This document shows positions 9,702 through 57,427 of a stretch of DNA of 64,000 nucleotides, in pieces. The notes below the pieces were generated by a model. It was not told where the DNA came from. It saw only the letters and a program-made list of their open reading frames with translations, and did not search any database. The position numbers and the translations under genes were made by a program. The DNA comes from Geosiphon pyriformis uo1 (lineage: Eukaryota; Fungi; Glomeromycota). Where the stretch lies: contig JAAOMT010000617.1 of NCBI GenBank assembly GCA_016748015.1, positions 248,001-312,000 of the forward strand, given 5' to 3'. The stretch's first letter is position 1. Each line of letters starts with the position of its first letter.

Positions 9702-10019
9702 GACTACGATTGTCTCTTGGTCAACCTTAGAAGCGGTGAATTAAATTCCAAATTGGCGCTATAGTTCTCTTATCTAGGATGGTTTATGTCATAATGAGCT
9801 AGCAGTCACAAAAAAATTATCTTAGTCGTTATCTATATTTAAATATGAAAAATCATGTGAGCACAATATTACAGAAAAGATGAAAACTTAAAAAATGTCA
9901 ATTTTTAAATAAACTATATGTAAAAATATAAAGTTTCATATAAGAATTTTTTGGAAATTGAAACAACGGTAGGTGCAGACCGCTAGTCAAAGGACAATAA
10001 AATTTATTCGATAATTCTT

Positions 10020-13000
10020 GTTGAAGAGAGTGTGGTCGACAAATAGTAGCGCTTTAGCTTTTATATTATTATATGTCCACATCTTTCAATCTGTTTTATT
10101 ATCTAAGCATCTACAATTTTTTACATACATTTTCATTATTTTTCACACTTTTAGTTATAATTTATACAATATTTATTATTATATAAACACCAAATTTTAA
10201 TTTTCCATTTTTGTTATTAGATTAATAATTATTTAATAAAATTATTATAGTTTTTTAATAAATTATATAAAAAAGTAATAATTAATATAAAAATTAAAAA
10301 TATTTAAAACAAAATTAATAATCATATATTAAAATAAAAATAAAATATCATTATATTAATTTTATTTTTTAAATAATAATTTTGTTAAAAATAAATAATA
10401 TATAAATTAGATTAATAACAAATTTTTTTATTATTGTTTTTATAGTTTTTACAAGCAAAATTTTTTATAAAAAAAGCAAAAAATACATTTAATCTTAAAT
10501 TTAAAAAAAGTTTTTATTAAAAAATTTGATTTATAACTGAATTTATTATAAATTTTTACTATTTATTATTTTAATTAAAAATGTAATTAATTTCTGAAAT
10601 TTGTTTTTTAAGTTATAATAAATAATTAATGTATTAAAAAATTTTATCTATTTTAATAATATTAATATAAATAAAATGTAAAAATTTAAAATATTTTATT
10701 TATATTATTATTAAAATAAATAATATACAATAAATTAAAATAAAAAAACTTCTTTTTTCTGTTTATTCCAAATTCATTAAAAAATTAATAATGAAAGTGA
10801 AGTTTTTTTTAGTTTTATTTTTTTACTATTGTTTTATCACAATTTTACAAAAAACCAATCTTTTTATAATAAATTTGGTAGTTGTTTCTAATAATAATAT
10901 GTTAAAAAAATACTTAAAAGAGTATTTTATGGTCTAACAAGTGGTTTTTTCTTTCAAAAAAAAGTGTTTCAATTAATAATATTAAACACTTTAATAATAA
11001 AAAAGATGTTTTTTTGAACAAATTTTTATCTAATTTTAATATGTTTTTGAATAAAAATAATAAATTTAGTAATAGTAATAACAGTATTTTTTTAATTAGT
11101 AATAGCTTCAAATTTAATAATGCTAATAAAACTTTTAAACAAAAAAAATTAATATTAATATAATAAATAATGTACTTTTTGGCTCTTTTAACTTTAATAT
11201 AAATAAAAATGCAGAGTTTTTTTCTCTATTTTTTTTTAAACTCAATATAAATGTATTTATTAAGAAATTTTTATTTTAAACATTAATTTTTTAGTTATTA
11301 AAAAAAATTTATCTTAGAACAAATTAAAATTAAATAAAAATTTTTTTTAAATATAAATAATTAAAAGAGCTTTTACCTTTTTAAAATTTAGTAAAATTAT
11401 TTATACAACTTTTATATTAAAAAAAACTGTATTTAGGACATCAAATTTGGCAAAAAACAATAAAATAGATATAAATATCAATCTTAAAAAATCTATAAAT
11501 AATTAATTAAATAGTAATAATTAAAAAAATTTTAATAAAAATATTTAAAATAACTCTATATATTGTGTTACCTAAATTTAAAAAAATTAAGTCAATTAAA
11601 ATACAATTAATTAAATTGTGACAAAAGACATTAGTTAAATATGTTGATCATAATTAAGCTAAACTTTTGGTTTTTAAATAGTTTATTTTAATTAGAAAAA
11701 ATACAATCAGAATAATCAGAACTAATATTAACAAAATATCATAAAATTTTAAAGATATGTATATGGTTTTGTTTTATACTTTGTCAATAAAAATAATAAC
11801 ACATAATTTGTAAGATTTTATAAGTTTTATTAATAAAAAAACCTGTATAATTAATTATTATTTTGTTTCATATATATAAACTAAATATATAACTATTTGT
11901 TTTAATTTTAAAAATAGTATAATATCTGTTTTAGTTTTTATTTTGGTTTTTAAATATTTTTATCTAAAATAAACAAAGTTAAGTTTATTTTTTTGCTTCA
12001 TATATAAAAATTTTAATCTTGCTTTTTTTGTATATTTTTTTAGTATATTCTTAGTTTCTAAAATTAAGTTCAATTTTTGTTTATTAAAATTAAATAAATA
12101 CAGACTTATGATTATGTCAAAAAAGCAGCTTAATTGCTCATTTAATTTTTTTTGATAAGTTATTTTGGGCTTAAATTATTAATTATAATAATTCTGATTT
12201 TTTTTCTAAATTTTTGTTTTATAGTGCTATTTTTTTGGTCTAATATTTGTTTTTTTTGTCTGTTTTTATTTTAGATGTTTATTTAAATACTTTTTAAAAT
12301 TTCTGTCTAATTAAATTTTTATGGTTTTTGTTAAATTAAAGTTAATCTTGGCAAATTTTTTGGATTTCTTAATTTTTGTGTTTACTAATAATTATATTAA
12401 TTGTAATTACTTTTAATAAAAATATAAATGTTTTAAATTCATTTTTTTTCTCTTTTTTTAATATTATAAATGGTTTTCTTACTTTTAAGTTTTAATAGTT
12501 ATAAAATTTTTACTGTCAAAATTAATGATTTAAAAACCAAAATATTAATATTAAAAATTTTAATTAATACTATTTTAATTAGATTAAATTTTTTGGTTTT
12601 TGATTTTGATTTTTTTTATTTTAGTTTCTTAATAATTAATCTTATTTAAAAAATAAAGTATGGTATTTAAGTTTACACTTCTGGTTTAAATTTTAGTTAC
12701 TTAGGTTCTAAAGTTATAATTATTATAAATAATGTTTTGGCTAAATATATATACAAAGTTTTAAAATTGCTAATTAGTTTTTGTTAATTAAATTGCTTTT
12801 TAAGAACAAATTTTTGATTTTAATTTTAGAATTATATGCTAATACTACTTTAATAACATGTTTAATTTAAGCTAAAAAAATTAATTTATTAATTGCTAAA
12901 ACTATAAATAAATTTTTATTTATGATTTTAAATAATAATTTCAATAAAAATAATTCTTAAAAATATATTAGTTTTAAAAAATATTTTAATTTAAATTTAG

Positions 13001-13700
13001 TTAATTTTTTAATAAAAAGTTTATTTGTTAAGACTATTATATAAAATAATTTTAAAAGTATTAAAAAAATAATTAATTATATATTTATTTTTACTGATTT
13101 TATCAATACAATAATTAGTTAGAAAGTTTTAGAAGTTAAAAAGTATTTTTAATATTGATTATTAAACTGTTTCTGTTTATGTTAATTTAAATAGTCTATT
13201 AAATATACAATTAAGTTTTTTTTATAAATAAATTAACAAAAATTAATAGAAGTTTAATATTAAAAATATTAATAATTCTAAGTAAACTTGGTTTAAGAAT
13301 GCTATATTGGTTAATATTGCAATATATTTTAATATATTTGTTGTTTTAAAAAAGTTTTTAGATTTAAATATAATATAAATTATTATTTAAAAGATTATAT
13401 ATATCTTAACTAATAAAATTTTTATCAAGATTTTTTCTAGGTTTTAAAAATAAAAATTTTAGTGTTTAAGATTATTAAAATATTATGTACAGAGCTAAGT
13501 AATAAAATTGTTTTTTTAATATGTTGTTGAATATTTTTTTATAATATTAAAGCTTTAAATATTCAGGTTTTGTTTAATTTGAATACTAATTATAATAATA
13601 TTAGATTTATTTTATCTAATATAAAGAAGTTTTATTATGTATTTAAGTTTGTTAATTTCAAAAAACCAAAAAATTAAAAATTAAGTTTGTTTTACCAAAT
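10020..13700 (+). mobile_element. Degenerate non-LTR retrotransposon (LINE): ORF1 plus APE endonuclease; RT half missing
   Basis: Reverting A>G/T>C recovers ORF1-like text (KFKKIKSIKIQLIKL*QKTLVKY at ~11575, from EFGEIKSIKIQLIGLWQKALVE). APE motifs: ILNNNFN (=ILGGDFN, ~12925), IINYIF (=TIDYIF, ~13070), IDY (=TDH, ~13155). Many stops; almost no CpG. Confidence 0.75.
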
Positions 13701-15700
13701 AAATAGAAAATTTTGTTATTAATAAAAATTATACTATTATAAATAAAACTTTTACTTTTTAAATCTTGTCTATTTATTTAGCTATAATTAACTATTTATA
13801 TTAATTACTTATATTATATAATTAGCCAATCTATTTTTAAAATAAGTTATTAATGTAATTATTAACTTGATTATTGACTTAATTATTAATCTGATTATTG
13901 ACTAAATTACTAATATGATTATTAATTTCTTTTTGATTATATAAATAAGATATTTTAAGAATTGTAAAAAGTATTTATACTTAAATTATACTTAGATTAA
14001 TACAACAATATTAACTTTTTTATTTTTCTTTTACTATTTTTTTTTTTTTATTTGTATAATTATTAGTTTTTGTAAAGTATATTAAATAAATATTTATTGA
14101 AAAATACAACTAATACCTAATATTGAATTTTAAAAGTATTAACATAAAACATAGAATTATATTAGTATATTATTTTTTGTTAACAGTATAGACTATCTCT
14201 TTACTTTCAAATTCTCTTGTTATCTTTTGAAAAGAATAGTAATTGAAATATTTATAAAACTGATCTTATACATTAAATTTTTACTAATTTAATTTACTTA
14301 TTAAAGTTAAATTACTCTTTTTATTATTTTATTTGCCATACAATACTGTTTTTTTTTTGCTATTCATTAGCTTATTAATTTAACTATAATAATATATTAT
14401 ATACTGTTTATATAAAAGTATTATTTTAAAGAATAATATCTAAAAGTTTTGTTTATTTTTAGTAATGTTAAGATTTTTATTGGTAAATTATGAATTTTGT
14501 ACATAATTAAAGATAATTTACCATAAAAAGATATAATTAGTTAAGTTTAAGTTTAAAAAGTTTTAGAAAAAAGTAGTTTAGTATTGGTTTTAATTTGTGT
14601 ATATTATGCATATTTTTTTCTAATATTAATAATATTATTTTTATTAAAATAGATCTATAGTGTTGTTTTAATTGGCTCGAATAACTGGTCATATGTAAAA
14701 AATATGTAATTCACATCTAATTTATCTTACTTAATTTGATATATTGTGTTAAATAATATTTAAATCTTACTTATTAAAACAATAATAAATAAATTACAAT
14801 TTTTATTATTTATATAATTTATGTTTGATAAAATTAGATTAAAAAAATATTTTTAAATTAAATAATTGGTTTTATTTTATATGTTTAAGCTATAATTAAT
14901 CTGTTGTATTATTTATAATTATTTTTATAAATTTAATAAAAATAAAACAAAAGTTTGTTTTATTAAAAACACAAGTTCAAAATTTGGATTTAGTAATATT
15001 GCTAAAAAAAATAAAAAAATATAGAAAATAAATATATTTTTGAACTGTATTAATATATTTAAAAGTACAGTTATACAAACTTTAAAATAATAAAAATGTT
15101 TAAAATATTATAAATATTAAAAATTTGATTTTAGATTTTATGTAGTTAAAAATACCTTAGATACAGCTATAGTATATTAAAATAGTAAAAAAAACTTTTA
15201 CACAAAATTTTTGAAAAGTTTTTGATTTGTAAGATAAAAGTAAATAATATATTGAATTTTAAAAAAAATACATTGTTATAAAATAGGTTTAATTGGTCCA
15301 AATAATTATTTATATGTAAAAAGTACATGGTTTACATTTATATTTAAATATGTATATGTATTATTATAATAAATGCTTAAAAAAATTTTTGTCAATTTTT
15401 TTATAATTATTAGATTTTAATCAAATAAATAATTAAAAAATGTTGTTTATTTTTTTAAACTAATAATATATTATACTTTTAGATTATAATTTAAAGTTTT
15501 TATAATTAACAAATTCTTTTTTTAATATTGTACAAGTTTAAAAGATAAATTTTTTTTGTTTAAATTTTTTAGTATAAAAGCAATAAATCATAAATGAATA
15601 ATTCAAATTGGAATAGTTTATTAAAAATTCATTTCAATTCACTTAATTTCTTGTTTAAAATTTAATAATGTTTAGCTTATTTTAGCTTGAGTTAAAAACT
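13700..15700. mobile_element. Unidentified hypermutated repeat relic(s)
   Basis: Same extreme AT-richness and CpG loss. No domain recognised. Confidence 0.45.
13845..13926. repeat. Degenerate 12-bp tandem repeat (~TTATTGACYTGA)
   Basis: About 6-7 units differing mainly by transitions. Confidence 0.65.
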
Positions 15701-16446
15701 TTGGAATCTTTTCATAAATATATTAAAAAACATTAATCATTCTTAAGATATTGGGAAAAAATTAGGATTCATAATCAATAATTTGATCTGTTATAAAACA
15801 TTAAGATATTATGTCAATATTACAAAATCAATTGATTTTTGAGGAAATATATGATCTATTAGAAAATAACATTAAAAATAACCAATTTCTAGTTTCGATC
15901 TTTGGAAGCCATTGATGAATGGTGAGTACATCTTTAAACAATTGAAATCTCATTAAATCCTGATACACACATTAAAACAAACAAAATTTTGACAGCGGGA
16001 AGAAACAAAAAAGTATAAATTTATAGGTTCCTTTAAGGGTATAGTGTTTTGGTCTTAAAAGTCTAGACCTTCCTCAAGGATGATCGGGATACACGCAAAG
16101 GAAGATAACGTTTTTTAATTGTAGTTTTCATTTGTACCAAAATTTTCTTAAGTCATTGGCCTATTTTAGATTTGATAATCTTCTGAAATGGACCATATAT
16201 TTTCTTTCGGGATTAGACTTGGTTGATAAAAGTAATTTTCTCACAAAATGCCTCAGCCCGTGAAGCTCCCATAAATGACTCACAGTATTTTAAGAAATTA
16301 AATTTGCACTTAACACGCGGTGATGTTAAAAGGTTACTTCAAAAACGGTTTTTGTCAAATCTTAGCATTCAATAATAGACTAGAACCCTTGAGTTTAAAA
16401 GCCTTTAATTTAAAATCGATCTTTTAATGACACCAAATTTGATGTC

Positions 16447-38179: not shown

Positions 38180-39309
38180 CTAGGTTTGGCAAATTCCCAT
38201 TCGATATCCAAAGTAAGGACCATTATGCGCAGTACTTTCCATATCCCAATGATTAGTGAGACCATTACAATTCTATGAAAAAAGTAATTTCCCTCTTATC
38301 AAATAATTTTTTTAAGATAATTTTATAAAGAAAATACATTCACTTACCGATCCTGCGTTTAATTCAGTGGAACATAGATATACTTTCTCAATATCTGGAC
38401 AGTCACAATCGATTGAAATCCAAATTTCAGGCCTTGGATGAACCCATATAGAGGTGTAGTCACTTTTAGGCAACCGAGGTATATAGTCGTCCGTGTGAGT
38501 AATGCGATAGTAATTTAAGTTTTCCTCTTTTAATTTTTCAACCGTTAAAGCAAACTGAAAATCACCAATATGCGGTTGTCCAAAAGTGAAAACTTGATAT
38601 TTAAAATAATTAATTTTCTGGGCCAGAAAAAATCCCGCCATTAATGCGTAGGCTAAATTTAAGAATGAAACTATTAAAATAAAGACCTTTGAATTGAAGA
38701 ACTTGAAGCTAAGAATTCAATCTTACCCCCTCCAATACTATGTCCAATAAAGTTTATTTTGTCTAATTTTTTTTTATATTTACTAAAATTATAAATATTT
38801 CTAAGAATGATTGTGACTAAAGGGTCATAAATAATTGAAAATTGTTTATAAAAAACCCTATCAACTTCTATATTGGGATAATTTCGTAGTCTACTCATAG
38901 AATAGGTTTTATCCAACCATTGCTTTTTTGTAAACTCGATTCCACTGAATGAAACCCAAGCTTCTAATTTACCAGAATGATTGGGTAATATATAAGTTTG
39001 ACCTATAATATTTAAAAGAGATTTAGTTTTAATTTTTTTTTTCTAGAATGAAGAATAACATCTTAAAAAAAAGAAAATCAATGATAATTCACTATATATT
39101 CCCAGACTAATTTCTTCCATTTGGTTATGACAATAAGATATACTTGTCAATTCTGCTGCTTTATGAAAATAAAAAAATAGTCCAGGATTAGTTTTTGCTG
39201 ACAAGAGAACTTTTATACTAGTTGATTGAACTATAAAAAGAAATGCTAATATTAAAATAGTTTTATTAGTGAATATTGGGAAAAAGTATATTTTTTGACA
39301 AGAAAACAT
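38180..39309 (-). CDS. Class-3 lipase, probably secreted (4 exons)
   Basis: GHSIGGAYA nucleophile elbow, FTFGQPHIGD, YRITHTDDYIPRLP, HPRPEIWI, HNGPYFG; hydrophobic N-terminus. Confidence 0.92.
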
Positions 39310-41966: not shown

Positions 41967-43222
41967 TCATGCTAAGTAATCTTCTTCAAAGAACTTGACA
42001 ATATTTTGTGTAGTCTCGCGATCTAACGAACAGTCTAGCAACTGTGGTTCTGTTGCGGCTGAGATATTGTAGATCGTCTGAAGTCCTTCTTGAAGAACAT
42101 AACAATCTAAAAGATTTTTTAACGAAGCATTGAAAGTTTATTATAACAGTAACAAAATAACTTGCAAGCTGAAACTTTCGTTACCGTGTAGCTTGAGTTT
42201 TTCAGTACCGGCTGACATTTGCGAGACGAGATGAACCCATTTGTTTCTATTAGTCAAATTGGTTGTATCATTATCACTTTGTTTTTGCCACTTTTGGGAA
42301 ATTAAAGCTCATGTTTGGATATTACTATTCTCATTTGATTCGAAATTGTTCCTTTGAATGTATAAATTAAAATTTTCCTTACTTTTGCAAGATTTTCTTG
42401 AATGATCGGCTGTGTATCGGGGTGAAGTGCGTTGGAAACTTTTCCAGTAAAATTTATTATTTCTTGAGAATTATGGACAGGAATAGTTGTAATAGTTGTA
42501 GATGACGCGAGTAACCTAGAATTTATTTAAAATACTGTATATTAAAACAATCCAAAAATGTTATTATTACATTTTTGACCTTCGCCAAGACTTGCCGTCC
42601 TTGAATTTCATACAAAGGCTGAGCATTTCCCGATATTAGATATAGTAATAAGTAGACTTTAGAATATCGTTGATTTGAAAGTTGAATTCTTTAAAATAAA
42701 AATAGAAAAATATTAGCATCACAATCCTTTATCCTTTAACTTTCTAATCAAAATCAAATTAAAAAAAAAAAAGATTTCATTTCAACGGTGAATATTCTGA
42801 ACTTTACCTCTTAACACACTGACGAATTAGTTCTTGCTTCTGTCCATCTAAAGTTAATAACTCCCAATTTTTACTAGTGAGGCATAGAAAGGTAATATTG
42901 GATTTCGTGAAAGTAATATCCTATTCAAATAGATTTACAAATTAGTATTCAAAAATGATTGAGAAACTTAATGCCCATAGAAAAAATACCCCGGGAGTCG
43001 CCTGTGTGCTTTCCACATCTAAAGAAAGCACACGAAATAATCGGTTTTAAGAAAAATCGGAAAGATGAGAAAATTTTTTTACCAGATCTTTAACTTGACA
43101 AAAAAATTATGGAAAATTTTCTCACATCTAACACGCCATTCTTCTTTTTTCATATCCTCAGCGATACGTTTCCATTCATCAGCCAAATTCTTATTGAATA
43201 AAACAACTGGTTGTTGAGACAT
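41967..43222 (-). CDS. SPO16: SPO16/SCRE (C1orf146)-like ERCC1-fold meiotic ZMM protein with C-terminal HhH-like region, 236 aa, 7 exons
   Basis: Exons 43222-43126, 43018-42990, 42920-42808, 42688-42596, 42515-42383, 42290-42185 and 42106-41967 join without stops. RVRYVES...GDITFTKSNITFLCL and YEIQGRLL...IPVHNSQEIINF align by eye with C1orf146 (KVRYSDS..GSIIFSLSGVAFLL; FRIQQRFL..LPVHNTVNAINL). Confidence 0.8.
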
Positions 43223-43674: not shown

Positions 43675-45238
43675 TTATGGAAGGTAAATAAGTTCTATTT
43701 CGAAAGTATTTGAAAAAATAAGAAAGTTTAGCATATCAAATTAAAGAATTAATCAATATAAAATTTAATAACTAACCTTTAGAAAAATCAATCATTTGCA
43801 AAGTTAAAACACGACTTGTATAAACTGCTCCCGGATGGATGCTCGTTGTCGTTGGATCATTTTTTATCGATTCGTTCTTCGATATTTCTTTTACATATTC
43901 ATCTGATTCTAAAAACTGTACTACTTCAGGACTCTTAGTTTTAGGTTCTTCACCTGTAGACTCCTCATCTGTAAAGTTCTTATTTCTAGGCTTTTCATAT
44001 ATCTGGTAAAGTTCTTCCAACTTCTCGTAAACCTCATGAGCAGTAGGACGACTCAATGGATTAGCATCCCAACACTTTTCAATTATTTCGGCAATATAAG
44101 ATGGAATGAGAGGGGAAGTGATTTCAGGTCTAGCACCATTTAAAATAGCCATCACGAGAAGATGATCATGGGAACGATCATAAAAGGGAGGCTTTCCTGT
44201 TGCTAATTGCCATAATAACATGGCAAAACTATAAATATCACCAGCCATTGTAAACTTTTCTCCTCTTAAAACTTCTGGTGGAATGTATGGAACTACTCCA
44301 TAGATTTCTTTTTTCTTCTCCGTTGCTTTTTCTGTTGTTGGGAGGTTGTTTGTAGGTTGACATAATCCAAGATCTCCAATCCTTAACAAACTTTTTTGAT
44401 GTTGTAAGATGTTGCCTGAGTGAAGGTTATGATGAATCATACCAGAAGAATGAATATTATCAAGTCCAGAAATTAAATTTCGCGCGATACTTAATTTATC
44501 TTCCCAACTCGTAGAATGAAAATTCGTTGATAAATAGTTTCGTATATTCCCATCTTTGGCAAAATCCATCACAATTCCATATTCGAGTGTTTCAGCGTTT
44601 TTTGTAATTCCGTATATTTTAGAGATATAGTATAGATAATTACCGTTGTTATTCATAAACATAGTTCTTTGAGTATATAACTATCAAAAATGAAAAATAA
44701 ATAAATAAATAGATAATATAAATAAGTAAATAAATAAATAAATAATAGCTAAATAAGAATTAAATAATAAAAATAATTTGATTACCTCTTTAAGCACTTC
44801 TTCACTATTCTTCATAAATTTTATTGCTACTTCCATCCCTTCTTCATTCCTTTTATATCTTTCATATTCCATTTCACCATGATGCTTTAGGCTAGATAGA
44901 TCAATCTTTCCATCAATCCATGTTGCTTTATAAATTACACTGAACCCTCCTCTAGCAATTTCGTTGATATTCGATAAACGCTCCCATGGAATCCATTCAT
45001 AATAATTTAAAATACCAGAATAATGATTTTTAGCAGGTGGATAATAGATTGGATTCTTAATTATTTTATCAACTACTTTATTGCCACTTGATAAGTCCCG
45101 GTAAAGTTTTTCAAAAAATATAAACCAGCATGCTCTACAATAATTATTTTTATCGTATTGAATGCTCTCTTGACAGAAAGAACACAGGTTACAATCATGA
45201 ACTTCTGGGCGAGTTTTTTTAATTTCAACGTTTTCCAT
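43675..45238 (-). CDS. AMF-type tyrosine-kinase-like protein kinase, probable pseudokinase
   Basis: N-terminal CxxC...CxxC, EWIPWERL, IARGGFSVIYKA, VAIK, IHHNLHSGNIL, IGDLG, YGVVPYIPPE, CWDANPLSRP, IHPGAVYTSR. Short last exon (ELIYLP*) inferred. Confidence 0.9.
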
Positions 45239-46339
45239 GGTGTGGATAAAGGACAAAGGATAAGTGCGAATAAATGTGAATAGGGTATTATTCGAAGAGG
45301 CTTTTTTATAAGCTTTTATTAATACTACGTTTGGAAAGCAGTATTTTATTGTTTTTCTATGTTCACATAGTTTGACATGTGAATCAATCAAATCATCGAC
45401 CCTTTAACCTTAAATAGTTATAGTGCATAAAGACGCCAAACAAGTTTTCTATTGTTACCTAAACGAGTAGTTTTGGGCTTTGTAGGCTTCGTGTGAACCA
45501 TGAGAAATACCATATGATTCAATCATAAGCTATTGCCTACTAAACGAGAGCTTTTTAAACATGTTAGTTAACATTTATTATATAACCTATCACTTCCATA
45601 TTAATCACTGGAAACACTTTTACCAATAAATGAACAGGTGAACTTAAAGGATCTATTTTTTTAACATAAAATATTTTAAGGTTATGCTTTAATAATAGAT
45701 ATCTTTATTAAATGTTTATTTCTCCGTTATTTTAGTTTGCCTAACACTAAACAAAAAGGTTTTATTAATGACTGCTTTTCATTTTTTATTTTGTTAACTT
45801 TCAATTTCTTTTAAACTATTTAACTTTCAGATTATTAATTATTCGATTAAAGCATCCTAAAAGAATTTTTCTTTTGGGAATGCCTAAAAATTTTTAATAA
45901 ACGAACTAATTAAAGAATATCAAATAAGGGTGGTTTGAATTTCAAATTGGTTAAGCTAAGATAAATCAATAACTCTAAATAGCAAAATGATTTCCACAAC
46001 TGCTATAATCAATAAATTCAGTGCTAATATACAATAAATTTTGAAAAAAAAGTTTAATGTTTCAATTAAAAATTTTAAATTTGTAGATTTTCTTTTATTT
46101 CAAAAAATAATCAAACATTATAATTAGAAAATTAATTTTTGGAATTTAAAACACTTGATTATACATATAAGTTAAAATAATTCAATATTTCTTGATTAAA
46201 AATAAGATCTTCAAAACATGTTATAAAATAAAATATATGTAATTAAATGTTTGATTTAATTAATTCATAGTTTTCATAGACTGATTCTTTATAAATTTTG
46301 TATAAAAAGCTTTTAAGTTTCCAACGTCTCAAAAGAATA

Positions 46340-47399: not shown

Positions 47400-49340
47400 A
47401 ATGTAATAAAATAGAATTCAAAAAAATAATTGGGTTTTTATTAATTATTGTGTATTCAAAATAAAAAATATATTATTAAATGTTGTAATTAATTTTAAGC
47501 TATTAATTATTCTAGCTAAAATACTGTTACCAGTTGAATTTGAATTAAAATTAGCATAAAATTATCTTTCTAATTCTTATTATTAATTAGTATTAATTAT
47601 TTAATTTAAAATTGGGTTTTAAAATTTAAAATTTAAAATTACTAAATACTAATCTTTGGCTTATGAAATTAACAAAGTTTGAAGTTTAATAATAATTGTC
47701 TCAATAATAATAATTATTTTATTAAGAAATTTATTATTATTATTAACTAATGAGTGAAGCCCAATTACTATCTACTATGGTACAATAAGATATATGTTAT
47801 AATATAAATATGGCTTATGTACTTTCTTTATATGACTAACCACTTGGCCGATTAAGACATTTAGTGCAATTGAAACATCTCTCATTAAATCTGAAAAAGT
47901 TATATTTTTAAAATAATATCTCAAAATTTTAAAAATTTAATTAATAACTTTAAATTTATCTAAAATGTTTTTTTATTAAAATTTATGTAATATTAAATAA
48001 ATTTTAGTATTATTAAATTTGGTAAATTTCTTTAAAATTAATGTAAATTTTACTTAAACTGTTTAATATTTATTTAAACTTTACTTGAACTGCTTAAAAT
48101 TTATCTGAATTATTTGAATTTTACTATAAACTACCAATCTTAATAAATAAAAATAATTCTTTAATGTTTTGAATTTTAATTTTTAATTAATAACAATAAT
48201 TTTAGCAGTATAAAGTTTTTGATTAATAAAGTTTTATTCTTAAGATATAATTAATATTAATCAAAAAATGTATTGTTTAAATTTAAAAAAAACCTAAAAA
48301 GTTTTATACATTTTGGCAAATACTTTTTGAAAACTTTGAATAAGCAATCACAATTATAGTCTATTTTTAAAAATTTATAATAATATATTTTTATATACAA
48401 TTTGTCTAATTTTTTAATATTATTAAAAATTAATTATTATACATAAAAACAGTCATATCAACTAAAATATATTAAGCTTATCTATATTAAATTAATCAAA
48501 AAATTGCTTTCGGGTTTTTAAAATATCTGATAACAAGTCTATTAAGAAATATTTAAATAAAAAAAATCATTAAAAATCCAAAAAAATAGCCAAAAAATGA
48601 ATATTTTTAAATGCTTATTAAGAACTAAAAAAAACCAAAAATATTAAAAATAAATTACTTATTTTATATAAAAATAATTTTATATTATTTTAATATATAA
48701 AATTTTTTTATTTAAGTTTTATTTAATAATGTATATCTATAATAATACTTATATAAATATACTTATTTTTATAATTAAGATTTCTTTTAAATTATATTAT
48801 AAGTTATAAACATCTAATATACTATAAAAATATTGTAGATACTAAGATATAAACAATTTATAAATATTTAATATAAGATAAAAATGTTAATATCTTTAAA
48901 ATAACACTTTTTTTTGATATTTATTTGGAGTTAACATCTATTTTATAAAGTATATAAGAATATATCTGTTTTTAACAGCCATAATAATGTGTTTTTATAA
49001 ATTATTATTTCTTTTTTTACTAATTTAGTTGTTTAAAACTTTTAAATCATAAAAAAATTGTGATTTATTCTTTATAATAGTCTTTAAATATGTCTTAAGC
49101 TGTTTTATTATATTTTTTATAACAGTATTAATAGTTATTAATACTGGTTTCTTTTGTTTTTTTACTAATATATATATTTTTTGGCCAGTAATCTATTATT
49201 ATTTTTCTTAATAACTTTTTTAACAAATCTTTAAAAATTTTTATAACTATATAAAACTTTCTGATTATTTATTAAATCTTTTAAAAAACACAATAATATA
49301 ATATTTTTTAATCTTAAAATAATACTAAAAGTTTTTTCAT
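47400..49340. mobile_element. Hypermutated repeat relics, unclassified
   Basis: AT-rich and CpG-poor. A possible integrase-like YWP remnant near 49180 (-). Confidence 0.4.
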
Positions 49341-50068
49341 TATTATTAGCCAAAATTTAAAATATTATTTAATATAAAATTATCTTTATAATTCTTATTA
49401 TCAATTAGCATATCTTATAGTTTCAATTTATTACTTATTATTTTATCAAATTATTCGAATTAATATTTAATTAATAACTCAATTTGTATAAAATACAAAT
49501 ATAATCAAATTATACAATATATCGAACCATATAATATTTAAAATTTGCCAAAATATTTAATAGTTTATCAAAATAATCCATAAATTTACAGAAATAACTT
49601 GTAATTCAACAAAATATATCTTTAGTTTGCTAAAATATTAGAAAAAAAAAAGTGTTAAATTATAGAATAGTATTATAACAAATTATATAAAAAAAAAGCT
49701 TTTTTTTTTAAGAAAATATATTTTGTACAAAATATTTTAGCTAGAATCATATTTCTTATAAATTAATTTCAATAAAAACTCATTTTGAAAAACATAAAAT
49801 TCTTAATTATTATTGTTTAAAATTATCTATTTTATACTAACAGTTTGAAATTAATTAACTATTAATTTTAGTAATTATTAGTAACTTTTTTAACTTATTT
49901 TCTTATTTTTTTTTATTATAAGCCCAATAGCATATATAATTCAAAGTATAAAAAATACTTTGAAAAAAAATTAGCTTATTAAAAGTTTACTAATTTTTAT
50001 TAATAATAAAATTAACAGCAAAACAGTATTAATAATATCAAAAAAAAAGTAAAAAAACCTTAGTAATA
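49341..50068 (+). repeat. 5' LTR of element A
   Basis: Colinear with 59518-60496. Termini TATTATTA...TAGTAATA (mutated TGTTATTA/TAATAACA). Confidence 0.7.
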
Positions 50069-50786
50069 TTTAGTGTTCTTCTAAAAATAACACAGCAATA
50101 ATTAAATTAAAATAGTGATTGTATTTAACATAAAAACTTTAAAGTATTATTAGTTAATTTACATCTACTACAAATAACAATTTGAAAATTTAAAATAAAA
50201 TTACAGCTTTTAAAAAAACTTTTTTTAATACATTAAAAATTAAATTAATAACTATTTTTTTGGAAATTACAATATTACAAAAGTCCAAAAAAAATCTTCT
50301 TAAAAACTTAATTTACTATTTAAATGAAGATCCAAAAGCTATTAATACTAATACTTATATTATTTACTTTAAAAAACTTAACTATAATATCATCAAGTTT
50401 TGTAAAAAAAATATTCTGTTGATTTATAATTTGTTTTTAAATTTGAATTAAAACTAGAAACAAGCAGCAAAGACAAACAAAAAAACACCAAATTTGTTTA
50501 CATAACTTCTGATACATTAAAAACAATATTTAAACAATTATATACATTTAAACAAAGAACCAATACTAAACTATTACTTTTAATCACATTTTTTTTTAGC
50601 TTTACTTGCTCAAACACAAATGCTAAACTTATTTTTTAACCAATTTTTAAGACCAGAAGACTTTATTAAAAGCTTTATTTAACAGTCAGAATTAATTTAT
50701 ACTAGTATTAACCTTTTTAATTATTTAGCAAAAAACCAAAATAAACATTCAAAAACATTAGCCAATGAAAAAAATATTTCTGAGTC

Positions 50787-50828
<42 letters not shown>

Positions 50829-53800
50829 ATAAATAATTAAGAAAACAAAAAAATAGCCACTGTTTATATTGCAAAAATTTCCAATTTTTCTGAAAAAAAT
50901 ACTGAAACCAGTTTTCAAAAATAGCTTAACCAAATTACTAAAGCAGAAGATATAAACAGATAGAATACAATAAAAATATTAAAAGCAATTTCTTGCTTTC
51001 TTAAAAAAACTGCAAGTAAATAGTTTAAAACCTTGGTCAATATTTTAATTACTTTTTAAAACCACTTTTAAAATATTAAACAAAAATTATCAAAATTAAT
51101 TATAACTTATATTAGGAATTTCAACAAACTTTTCAAAAAAATTTAACAACTAGAAACAAATACTTATTATTCTAAACTTAAATTTTAGATCAATTTATTA
51201 CTGGTTTAAAAAATTAATTAATTTAAAAATCTTAGCCTAATTATTATTAATCTGTTTTATTATAACAACAGTATTATCAACTATTATTAGTTTAAAGTTA
51301 TTAATTATTAACAAAAAATTGGTTTAACTTAATTAATTTATATCATAAAACTGTTTTCAGTTAAACAACAACAAATTTGGTTCCAATAATTAATTAATAT
51401 TTTGTAATAATTATCAATAGTTATTTAAATACTTTTATATACAATTCAGTTATTTTATTATACCTGAAAACCAAAATTTTTATTATATTAAACTCTTAAA
51501 AAATAAAACTATAGCACAACAACAAATTTTTTTTTTAACAATATTATAATTTTACTAGTAAAAATAACCAAAAATACAAATATTTTAAACATATTTTTAT
51601 TTAAATTTAAAGTCAATAAATTATTTTTTCTACTTAATAATGCTATTACTTTAGAACAAAAAGCCACTACAATAATATATATTAAAGCAAAAGTTAAAAA
51701 AAAATCAATTTGATTGATTCTAAAAAATAAATTTGTCAAAAACATTATTATTTATCAACTAATATAATAATTAAAAAAAAATATTGACCAATTGGCTTAA
51801 ACAATGATTATTATTGCTAATAGTATAAAAAAGACATCTGTAGAAAAAGTTGACAATTTTTTTTTTATAATTAATAAAATTACTATTTTAGTTAAAATTC
51901 TTATTATAAATGTACTTTAATATTAAGCTTTTATCAGAAATAATTGGCTTTGAGAAGCCAATACAAGTTTAATTTAAAAAACCCAAAAATTAAAAATTTT
52001 ATATCAAAAAAATATATTAAAGTATTTGTTATTTATAATATTTTTAATATATAATTTGAAAAAGTCTCAGTTTTCGAATTTAAAAAAAGACCAATTAGCA
52101 AAACTTATATGGCTCTTAATTTTTGGTTTGATTGGAGTAAAAAAACAGAACAATTATTTAAAACATTTATACTACAATTAATATTATTATAATTTAAAGA
52201 TACTAATCAACAATCTATATTAATAAATAAATAAATCAATAATTAATATATTTTTTATTCTAAACTTTAACTTAGAAAACAACCAGTTTATATTTTACTC
52301 AAATATAAAAATTGTAATAAAAAGCTTTTATCTATAAAAATCTATATTGTAAAATTTGTTACAAAAAATAATTTAATAATTTTAAATAAAATAAAAAATA
52401 AGACAATACACTTTGTTTTACATATAAAAAACTATTACTTTAAGAATACAACTAAATTAATATTGTAATAAAAAGAAAATTTTGTGACCAAATTTGTTAA
52501 TATGCTCTTTTTATTTTTTAAAAAGTAAAAAAAATAACATTATTTACAGTAATTTATAATAATACTGTTAACAAACTCTATTACTACTTATATAATACTA
52601 AGATAATTTACAAACTAACTATAGTTCTTATTAATAAAAGAACTTAAAAAGACACTTACCAAATAAAAAAAATAAAAAAAATTAAATATATTATAAAATT
52701 AGCTAGATTTAACTATAAAAATAAAGTTGAACTTTACTATTTAAATTTCAATTATGTTTATTTTTCTAAAAAAACCCAAATTTAATAATTAAAGCAAATA
52801 AATATTCAATTATGTAAAAAATACATTATGTTTTATAATAATATGTAATGTTCTGAATATTTTGTTTTTAGCATATTATTATTTACTAAAAATAACCAAG
52901 AATAAATTAAATTTAGAACACAAAAAAAACAGCCAAAAATTTCAACAATTTTAATCTATCTTATTAAAAACCAATTTGCTTTACCACTTAAATATTTTAA
53001 TAATAATAAACAAAGAATTAAATCAAAAAAAGCTTATAAAACTGATGCAAAATTTAATTTTTATTTTAAAACCAAAATTATTTACAAAAATTAATCTCAA
53101 AATTGCTTTCAAAATTCTATTAGAAGCAATAGTACAAATTGCTTTTTAATTATTATTGTCAAGCAAAAAAATCAATATTAAAGAAAAAATTATTAATACA
53201 AGATATATAAGAAATATTACAATAATGTTTTAAAATAAAACTAAAAAGTTATTTAAAATTAAACATATTAAAAAAATTGTTTAAGCTATTTATCTATTCT
53301 TAATTAATATTTCAGGTTTTTAATTTGTTAAAAATCAAGAAAAACTTGACAAAAGCAAAAAAGAAATTCAAGAATTTGAATTAACTAAATAATTTATAGT
53401 TTTAGTAAATATAACTTTTAATATATAAAATAAATTTTATTAGATTTTTAGATTACCAAAAACAATTATTATTTTATCTTTTAGAGAAATTTATAAAGCA
53501 TATATATGTCCAATATTTATTATTAATTAACAAATTTTTGAATTCAACAAAATATTTACAAAAAATATGAAATTTTAATTTCTAATATTTATTTACCAGA
53601 AGAAATTATAGAATTCAATATTATATTTTACAATTTTAATAACCATCTTATTACATTAGATAATTATTTAGAAATTAAATTTATTTACAATAACATTTTT
53701 TAGCAAGAGTTATTCTAAATAGTTTCAAATTTTACAAAAATAATTGAATATTTTTTTTCAAAATTCAACTTAACTTTTATTATTAAGAAATTATTTCAAA

Positions 53801-54954
53801 TCAACATAAAACAATTAAAATCACAACAACAAAACCAATTTAAACAACTAATTATTAAAAATGCAAACATATTTGCAAAAAGCAATAATAATTTAGAAAA
53901 AAACTAATCTAGTTTAGCATTAAATTTATACTGGGAATACAAAACTAAAACACTAACAAGTCTACCAAGTCTTATTTAAAAGTCATTAATTTATCTAAAA
54001 AAAAGTCCAATACATGCTTAACAATAAACTTATTCAATTATTAATAAGTTTTTAAACTTTATTAGTAGTTTTTATTAAAAAAAAAAGAGAAAAATCCATT
54101 TTTGTGTTGACTATTACCAATTAAATAGTATTACAATTAAAGATGTTTATTTTTTATCTTAAATTAATAGTATATTAGATGTTCTTAACAAGTCAAATAC
54201 TTCTTAATCTTAAATCTAAAAAATAAATATTAACAAGTTGCTATAAATCTCAAAGACTACTCAAAAACAGCTTTTATTATTCAAAAAAAAATTATAAGTC
54301 CAATATAATGTTTTTTAGATTATGCAATATATTAACAATATTTTAGAAACTATGAATATTGTTTATGTTAAAGTTTTTTGAAAGTCAATAATTGTCTACT
54401 TAAATAATACTGATATTTATTTGTAAAAAGTTTTTTAACAATTATAAAAAGCAAAATTAAAATTAAATATCGAAAAATATTATTTTGAAAAAACCAACTT
54501 GGTTTTTCTAAATTACATTGTTAATAAAAAAGAAGTCAAATCTAATTCAAAAAAATAAGTATTGTTAAAAATTTCAAAGTTTTTTAAAATATTACTGAAT
54601 TAAAAAAATTTACAAAATTAGTATTTTATTATTAAAAATTCATCAAAAGATTTACCAAATTACTGAATTATCTAATCAACAAAAATATTAAATATAAATA
54701 AACTTTAAAACAACAAAAAATCTTCAATATTTTTTAAAAAAAACTAATAATAGCTTTAATTTTAGCTTATTTCAACTTCAATAAAAGATTTTAACTAGTT
54801 ATAAATACTTTATATATAGTTTTTAATACCATTTTATTTTAGCTAAATAAAAATAAAAATGAGCAAATAATTGCTTATGCCAGCAAAAAATTAAAGTTAG
54901 CAAAAAAAAATTATTTTGTTACTAAATTAAAAACAGTAATAATAATTTGAATTC
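49341..54954 (+). mobile_element. Ty3/gypsy LTR retrotransposon A (5'LTR-gag-PR-dUTPase-RT-RNaseH), truncated by nested insertion
   Basis: LTR 49341-50068 then PBS-like TTAGTGTTC. Protease remnant ~51650-52050 (LILKNKFVKNII = LILDSGSAGSII). dUTPase ~52990-53380. RT FCVDY (~54100) and IVYLNNT (=YLDD, 54391). RNase H IAYASKKL (~54870). Confidence 0.9.
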
Positions 54955-57427
54955 TGTTATAGATAATTATTTGCAGTATTAAAATAAATAACAAACTTAT
55001 AACTTGATACTTAATAGTTAATTATGCTGTTAATAATTTCTAAAGGTTTTTAATCTAAAAGTTTTGGTTGAGTTTTTTTGTATAATAGACAAAAATTTAC
55101 TTGATAATTGTTTTTCTAAATTTTTTTCTTCAATATAAAAGCCAATTTAATTTGATAGTTATGTTCTTATAATAAGTTATTTTAAAGTTTTCATTCTTGT
55201 TTCATAGATTTTTTACTAAGCTATTCTTAATATTAATATCTTAATGTTTAATTCTTAAATTACCTAGTATACAACAAAAAACAAAATAATACAAAATAAA
55301 AGAAAAATAAAAAAAATAAAAAAAGAAATAAAAAATTAGTATTCTGTCAATAGCTATAATCAAGAGCTATTGGTTTAATATAATTAAGTAACAAATTTTA
55401 TCAATATAAGTTGCTAATAGAATCGAAAAATAATAATTTTAATCCAATGATAAAAATAATATAAATTGGATGATAAAGCAATAATTTTATTTTAATATTT
55501 AAATAATTCTACTTCAAAATATAGAAAACTATTTTTTAAAAAAAAAGTATGTTATGAATAATTATTGTTAACTAATTAAAAACTTGTCTAAATTTGAATG
55601 TTTTTTTTACTTTTAATATTACTATTATATATAAATAATTTTTATTATATAAGATTTTACATATTTTTATTCTTTTATATACTATTTTCTAAAACTGTGC
55701 TTATTTTTGAACAATATATCATGATTTTTTAAAAATATGTTATGATTTCTTGACAATATGTTTATTTTTTATAAATATATACATTTCTAAAAATACACAT
55801 ATATATTAAATATTATTTCTTATTAGGCTATTTTTCTAATTTATTTTCTTTATTTTTTAATATTGAGCTTTATCAAAATTTTTATTTTAAATTAATTTTA
55901 TTACTTTTTTTTTAATATTGTGTATTTAATTTTGATTTTTAAATCATTAAATTAGAAGTTAGTCATCTTTTTTTATTGGTTAACAGTTATTGTTTCTATT
56001 TCTAAATACAATAATATTTTTGGGTAATCTTAAAATATGGTTTGTAATTAATAAATTGTTTTAATATATAATATAAAACTTGTTTTTTTTAATAAAGTCT
56101 TCAATTTGTTATACTATTTATTAATTAAATGTTTTTTTGAATTTGTTTGTGTATAATTCTTAAATATTTAATTTTTGTTCTAGCTAATAGTAACAATATA
56201 TTCTTGAAAGTTGTTTTATTTATAACTTTTAATTTTTTTTAGTCAATTTTTTTAAAAGTGGTTTTTACTTTTTTTATAATTTTATTTGATTAATAATTTG
56301 GTTATTTTTGTGATTATTAGTATAAACTGCTCTTTGTTTTTTTTTTTGTTTGTATTTTTATAACAAATTGTTTAGTAATTAATAATTATTTTTATGTTTA
56401 ATTATTGTTAATTTATTGTTTAAAATAATTGTTATGTCAATATGTAAATATAATTAGAAATTTCTATTTTTCTGATTACTTTTGTTATATATATTGGTTT
56501 TTTATATATTATTTTGGTAGTTCAAATTTTGTAAGATTTTATTAGATTTAATTACTATTTATTATTTTTCTAATTGTGAAATATTATTGATAGATGATGA
56601 TATTATATTATAATATGATGTTAGTTAATTACTATATACTACTTTAATTAAGATTTTGTTGTTTTATTTTAACTTATATTTTCTATTTTTCAAAAATTTT
56701 CAATATGAAATAGATTATCTTATTTGGAATCAAATTTTCTATTCCATTGTTTTTTTGCTTGATATAATATAAAAGCACTTTGTTTTTAATCTTAAATTTA
56801 ACTGGTTTGTTTAATAACTAGTTGTCATGTTGTTTTTTTTTGTTTTTTTCATATCATTAACTGTTTTTATTTTTTTATTTTTAGTGTTTCTATTAAGTAA
56901 TAGATTTTTTGCAACAGTATTTTTTGATAATTAGTTTCTGTTATTGGTTTTATTGGATATATGTAAATATTTATCTTTATTGGTAGTGTTGTTGTTTTAC
57001 TATATATTAATTCAAATAATGTTATTTGTGTAGTATTTTGCTTCATTATTTGATAAGCAAATAATACTGATAATATAAACAAATTCTATTTGTTCTGGTT
57101 TTTTTGGCTGATTTTGGCTATTGTTTTACACAATATTCTATTAAATTTTTTAACTAAGCTATTGGTTTATAGATAATATAGAAATAATAATGGTTTTTTA
57201 ATTCCAAATTTCGGATTTAATTTTGTTAATGTTTTGTTTATAAAGTGAGTTTTTTGGTCTAATAACAATTTTTTTGAACATTTGTGTTAACAAATTAAAT
57301 CTTGGTATACAACTTCAGTTACAAATTTTGCATCTGCTTTTTAAATGGCTTTAACTTCTAACTATTTTGTAAAATAGTCTATGACAATTGCTATATATTA
57401 GTTGTTTTTGCTAATAATTATTAATGA
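54955..57427 (-). mobile_element. Ty3/gypsy element B: 3' part (integrase C-half, extra ORF, PPT, 3'LTR ~54955-55840)
   Basis: Integrase remnants DYFTK, LFAYQ, TLFELIYSK. LTR homologous to 57428-58401. Confidence 0.8.

Follow-up and report, generated by a model that had tools for sequence, protein, structure and literature searches.

The window analysed here, a 64,000-nt stretch of Geosiphon pyriformis DNA, is AT-rich (GC 0.13-0.38); at positions 10001-16000 and 48001-56000 it has two strongly skewed blocks whose GC is extremely low (0.13-0.17). Between positions 39309 and 43772 the ORF listing of the window contains no open reading frame of at least 70 aa. Within this interval a gene of seven short exons (29-140 nt) lies on the minus strand at 43222-41967, and the exons join into 711 nt of intact frame, in which 236 codons without an internal stop are followed by TGA. 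This model was assembled from the three-frame translation of the minus strand and bears out two claims of the initial annotation, namely that all exons fall below the cut-off of the ORF track and that they splice into an uninterrupted frame of exactly 236 aa. The exons have a GC content of 0.37 and the introns one of 0.21-0.28. Directly upstream, two long open frames on the same strand (43772-45391) carry kinase catalytic motifs recognisable by eye and may constitute a protein kinase gene. Open frames with a GHSIGG-type serine-hydrolase motif (lipase class 3-like) lie on the minus strand at 38312-38916, apparently belonging to a split or intron-containing gene.

Exon 1 (43126-43222, 97 nt) opens with the ATG at 43222 and begins an ERCC1-like central domain. 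Its product is 73% identical to residues 3-32 of an unnamed protein of Ambispora gerdemannii (CAG8482018.1, here P0003; 237 aa), which served as the principal reference for this gene. The central domain continues through a micro-exon of 29 nt (exon 2, 42990-43018), exon 3 (42808-42920, 113 nt) and exon 4 (42596-42688, 93 nt), and ends in exon 5 (42383-42515, 133 nt), which carries an invariant LP.HN motif. Exon 6 (42185-42290, 106 nt) encodes a linker and the first helices of a tandem helix-hairpin-helix (HhH) domain predicted at the C-terminus, whose remainder is encoded by exon 7 (41967-42106, 140 nt including the TGA at 41967-41969). The latter is the most conserved exon, with 84% identity to Ambispora. 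The C-terminal segment quoted in the initial annotation is present and spans the junction of exons 6 and 7 together with exon 7 itself.

All introns have an AG acceptor, and five have a GT donor. The sixth, intron 4 (42516-42595, 80 nt), is of the GC-AG type with the donor gcaagt, at a position where the orthologues have GT. Donors of the GC type usually read GCAAGT. Exon 4 was extended by 18 nt to this donor because the Ambispora orthologue aligns through that stretch, and the extended exon retains a motif conserved in all orthologues. A GT-only version of exon 4, using a donor 18 nt upstream and giving a protein of 230 aa, was rejected since it loses this motif and breaks the 93-nt length common to the Ambispora gene and two Rhizophagus genes. 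When P0003 was aligned to the window with tblastn, its residues 3-237 were recovered in order over the full set of seven exons (summed E 1.5e-73), a coverage that is far beyond chance.

The Ambispora protein had been found by an exhaustive protein search with exon 5 (44 aa), over which the two are 64% identical; aligned globally, P0003 and the window model are 70.6% identical. Orthologues were recovered by word searches, with P0003 or family profiles as the query, in about 16 Glomeromycotina species (from the genera Rhizophagus, Funneliformis, Glomus, Gigaspora, Dentiscutata, Scutellospora, Cetraspora, Racocetra, Acaulospora, Diversispora and Paraglomus) and in one chytrid, Borealophlyctis, at 34% identity. 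Profile word searches for distant relatives returned nothing outside Glomeromycotina except this chytrid. The close relatives all come from that subphylum, which fits the Glomeromycotina origin assigned to the DNA by the initial annotation. Every orthologue record bears the label hypothetical or unnamed, and a precomputed tag for the Pfam family PF15162 is attached to several. No entry from the genome of the window itself appeared among the matches of the protein searches; it is therefore probable that the gene lacks a model in that genome or that no protein set of the genome is public. Two unlike family records are present per species in Glomus cerebriforme (P0009 and P0017) and Rhizophagus irregularis (P0008 and P0015). 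P0017 and P0015 are shorter, with internal segments missing, and may represent a second gene copy or else a gene model that is alternative or mis-called.

Exon structure is closely conserved between the window gene (97, 29, 113, 93, 133, 106 and 140 nt) and its counterparts in Ambispora (97, 32, 113, 93, 133, 106 and 140 nt), R. irregularis (91, 29, 113, 93, 133, 106 and 143 nt) and Rhizophagus clarus (91, 29, 113, 93, 133, 103 and 143 nt), with exons 3 and 4 identical in length in all four genes. Other than the gene itself, no synteny with the Ambispora locus was found. Summed exon by exon, the comparison of the window gene with Ambispora gives a pN of 0.16 and a pS of 0.83, at which synonymous sites are saturated. 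Between R. irregularis and R. clarus, dS is 0.37 and dN is 0.06; this comparison across relatives, which the initial annotation had suggested as a check, yields a dN/dS of 0.16. Purifying selection acts on the family, and the window copy shows no defect. About 68.6 kb past the end of the window, on the same contig (C607:380636-381268, plus strand), lies a truncated and inverted duplicate of the 5' part of the gene. It extends over 641 bp at 95.6% identity and comprises 87 nt of upstream sequence and exons 1-3 with their introns, and breaks off 20 nt into exon 4; nothing of exons 5-7 is present. This duplicate is probably a recent gene fragment.

The initial annotation had assigned the gene to the SPO16/SCRE family, and this assignment is supported by several lines of evidence. 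The Pfam model PF15162 (SCRE, "Protein SPO16 homolog") matches P0003 at residues 24-156 with 33.9 bits and a second orthologue, P0018, with 30.8 bits, both above the cut-off of 27, although these scores exceed it by only 4-7 bits and use orthologues as a proxy for the window protein. Among 14 Glomeromycotina orthologues, ten match PF15162 at E <= 1 (best E 9e-9), and none matches the Rad10 model of ERCC1 (PF03834) or the FAAP24 pseudonuclease model (PF17949, PND) at that threshold. Searched singly, the exon pieces of the window gave no match to Pfam or to solved structures, and PF15162 likewise found nothing when run against the six-frame translation of the genome, an outcome to be expected with exons of 10-45 codons. 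A family-profile search of PDB sequences with the whole protein also returned nothing, and sequence similarity to yeast Spo16 was not detectable. In the ESM Atlas, ranking by features places first a SCRE-bearing cluster (0.93, with 201 of 256 features shared) and two plant PARTING DANCERS (PTD) clusters (0.91 and 0.89), with FAAP24 (0.84) and ERCC1 (0.81) lower. A search of the Atlas by structure lists C1orf146 and PTD near the top, each with a TM of about 0.5. The Atlas does discriminate between the subfamilies, placing SCRE and PTD over FAAP24 and ERCC1.

The genome has a separate Rad10/ERCC1 gene on another contig (C692), represented by three exon matches with 60.7 bits summed. The identification of the window gene as ERCC1/Rad10 itself was rejected on the basis of this gene and the absence of Rad10 matches from the 14 orthologues. 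A scan of the genome for ERCC4 domains found only XPF, MUS81 and EME1, as confirmed by Pfam, and no FANCM-type ERCC4 domain was present among the matches. Given a separate ERCC1 together with XPF, MUS81 and EME1, the window gene would therefore encode an additional ERCC1-like subunit. Taking the Pfam, Atlas, fold and genome evidence together, the locus is most readily explained as the Glomeromycotina orthologue of SPO16/PARTING DANCERS/SCRE (C1orf146 in humans), the small, catalytically inert and ERCC1-like member of a meiotic heterodimer of the XPF:ERCC1 type in which Zip2/SHOC1 is the other subunit, a reading to which we assign a probability of about 0.78.

No part of the family is more conserved than the C-terminal segment (about 80 residues with five predicted helices in the fungal protein), which the chytrid protein has as well. 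By sequence, it matches no HhH family in Pfam, and a PDB search returned only spurious summed matches to designed armadillo repeats. Structural comparison was more informative with the Atlas model (residues 157-237), for which each of the ten structural matches is a tandem HhH domain (TM 0.63-0.71), among them those of PTD (0.71), ERCC1 (0.70), UvrC, stand-alone HhH2 proteins and Hef, than with a low-confidence AlphaFold model of the isolated C-terminus, which gave Foldseek E-values of 3.5 or more and VIA-wide Z-scores below 4. Even so, HhH chains of FAAP24, ERCC1 and XPF were among the weak Foldseek rows. The initial annotation had described this region as an HhH-like segment that is extra with respect to human C1orf146. 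The Atlas comparison points to a longer HhH segment, as proposed; however, it would not be wholly extra, since mouse SPO16 is reported to possess a short HhH domain of its own, with three helices (PMC6357729). Judged from these models, the fungal protein looks like a fuller version of the PTD/ERCC1-type tandem HhH architecture, not a unique addition.

By analogy with yeast, plant and mouse (PMC5859969, PMC6411835, PMC6357729), a SPO16-type protein in these fungi would pair through both of its domains with an inactive XPF-like partner of the Zip2/SHOC1 type and bind branched recombination intermediates without cutting them. Together with Zip4/TEX11, it would then stabilise crossover-designated intermediates and so promote class I crossovers. 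Elsewhere in the genome, a candidate Zip4/TEX11 gene for the same complex, TPR-like and multi-exon, lies on the minus strand at C726:177000-186500, where one exon matches SPO22/ZIP4 (E 9.5e-5, profile positions 30-74), and MutS_V loci number five. A profile search of the genome for SHOC1/Zip2 gave no candidate with PF17825, a chordate-built model that does not provide a fair test, and the ERCC4 scan added no further candidate to XPF, MUS81 and EME1.

To our knowledge, sex has never been observed in arbuscular mycorrhizal fungi. Whether they undergo meiosis is a long-standing question. The initial annotation took an intact copy of the gene as a sign that the ZMM pathway has been retained. The gene is indeed intact and under selection, but the presence of ZMM genes in these fungi has been known since 2011, when an inventory reported MSH4, MSH5 and Zip4 in Glomus (PMC3184777). 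In the text of that inventory, a search turned up neither SPO16 nor ZMM and, under "zip", nothing but Zip4/Spo22 (PMC3184777). Among the papers covered by a literature search, none linked SPO16 with mycorrhizal fungi.

A true SPO16/PTD gene could also have been kept for work outside meiosis, for example in DNA repair or in recombination of a mitotic or parasexual kind within the multinucleate hyphae, in which case its conservation would say little about meiosis. In somatic cell lines, human C1orf146 was reported to be retained on chromatin following DNA damage (PMC11377751), and this finding, together with the lack of a SHOC1 match to the chordate-built PF17825, lends the idea some substance. 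However, the yeast, plant and mouse members are described as factors specific to crossovers in meiotic recombination (PMC5859969, PMC6357729), and other meiosis-specific genes coexist in these fungi (PMC3184777), so that an exclusively non-meiotic function is unlikely.

The fold of the N-terminal domain bears on a different explanation, that the gene is a FAAP24-like or other ERCC1-family paralogue, whose partner is of the FANCM/Mph1 type or an unknown XPF-like protein, and that it was drawn into SCRE by general resemblance. In the AlphaFold model of P0003, an alpha/beta N-terminal domain is predicted with a pLDDT of 70-90 and is followed by a helical C-terminus of low confidence. The central domain of this model has the XPF/ERCC4 fold and is ERCC1-like, as a SPO16/PTD/SCRE protein should be. 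Residues 1-146 score VIA Z-values of 11-13.6 against XPF, FANCM, ERCC1, Zip2, EME1 and FAAP24, compared with at most 8.3 for unrelated folds. The structural comparison proposed in the initial annotation thus recovered the XPF/ERCC1 fold, but SPO16 was not the best match. In Foldseek searches against solved structures FANCM:FAAP24 came first (E about 6e-6), and FANCM, FAAP24, XPF and ERCC1 all ranked above yeast Zip2:Spo16 (E 5e-4 to 1e-3). This order favours a FAAP24-like identity, as does the closeness of the Pfam SCRE scores to the cut-off. However, for the predicted model the six proteins are tied by structure and the fold does not separate subfamilies; because of this tie the best structural match cannot decide between FAAP24 or ERCC1 and SPO16, and the Foldseek rank carries little weight. 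With no PND or Rad10 match in any of the 14 orthologues, Atlas features that put SCRE and PTD over FAAP24, and no FANCM-type domain in the ERCC4 scan of the genome, such a paralogue is a distinctly improbable source of the gene.

That the window copy is decaying or unexpressed, its open frame reflecting only recent history, is least credible of all, for although it has one non-GT donor, a truncated 5' duplicate on its own contig at a distance of about 90 kb and no protein from its own genome in the searches, there are zero stops or frameshifts over seven exons, exon lengths and phases are conserved, pN lies far below pS in the comparison with Ambispora and the unusual donor has the usual GC-donor form.

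The SPO16 orthologue identified here is an unnamed addition to a known family and not a new kind of system. The gain is incremental, since the public proteomes of other species already contain gene models for it, several with an automatic SCRE tag. Its value lies in what it adds to the debate on meiosis in these fungi. A crossover-specific factor with few reported non-meiotic functions, whose sequence is under purifying selection and whose exon structure is kept across all major orders, adds weight to the view that a class I crossover pathway is at work. The gene also provides a small and specific marker for studies of expression and localisation, and a bait for the missing SHOC1-like partner. 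We give about even odds to a broader proposal, in which an ancestral full-length SPO16, with a complete tandem HhH like that of plant PTD, survives in arbuscular mycorrhizal fungi and in one or more chytrids and joins animal SCRE and plant PTD in one orthologous family. If this is true, a lineage without observed sex would possess a still unrecognised SHOC1/Zip2 partner and, with it, a complete Zip2-Zip4-Spo16 complex and an interfering-crossover pathway.

Compared with known systems, the fungal protein shares its fold and domain order with ERCC1/Rad10 and FAAP24, with comparable Z-scores, but differs from them in having no Pfam Rad10 or PND match and in its lower Atlas feature scores against them (0.81-0.84). 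Saccharomyces cerevisiae Spo16, known from the Zip2:Spo16 complex (PDB 6BZF and 6BZG), is likewise a two-domain and nuclease-dead ERCC1-like subunit, and both entries were recovered by the fold search. However, yeast Spo16 carries just one HhH motif (PMC6411835), and the best VIA chain of the two entries is Zip2 and not Spo16. The resemblance to animal SPO16/SCRE/C1orf146 lies in the central domain, which in the fungal orthologues exceeds the PF15162 cut-off, and in overall shape, where the Atlas search lists the C1orf146 cluster first, with an rmsd of 3.1 over 133 residues and a TM of 0.47 by query or 0.62 by target. With 176-186 aa the animal proteins are the shorter ones, and the three-helix HhH reported for the mouse protein (PMC6357729) contrasts with the five helices predicted for the fungal C-terminus. 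Plant PTD, the partner of SHOC1, differs in that the C-terminus of PTD clusters matches the Pfam model HHH_5, whereas that of the fungal protein matches no HhH model and its likeness to PTD is one of Atlas features and structure. In other respects PTD appears similar, with cluster members of 243-250 aa against the 236 aa of the window protein, the same predicted order of an ERCC1-like central domain followed by tandem HhH, Atlas feature scores among the highest and the closest structural match to the fungal C-terminus.
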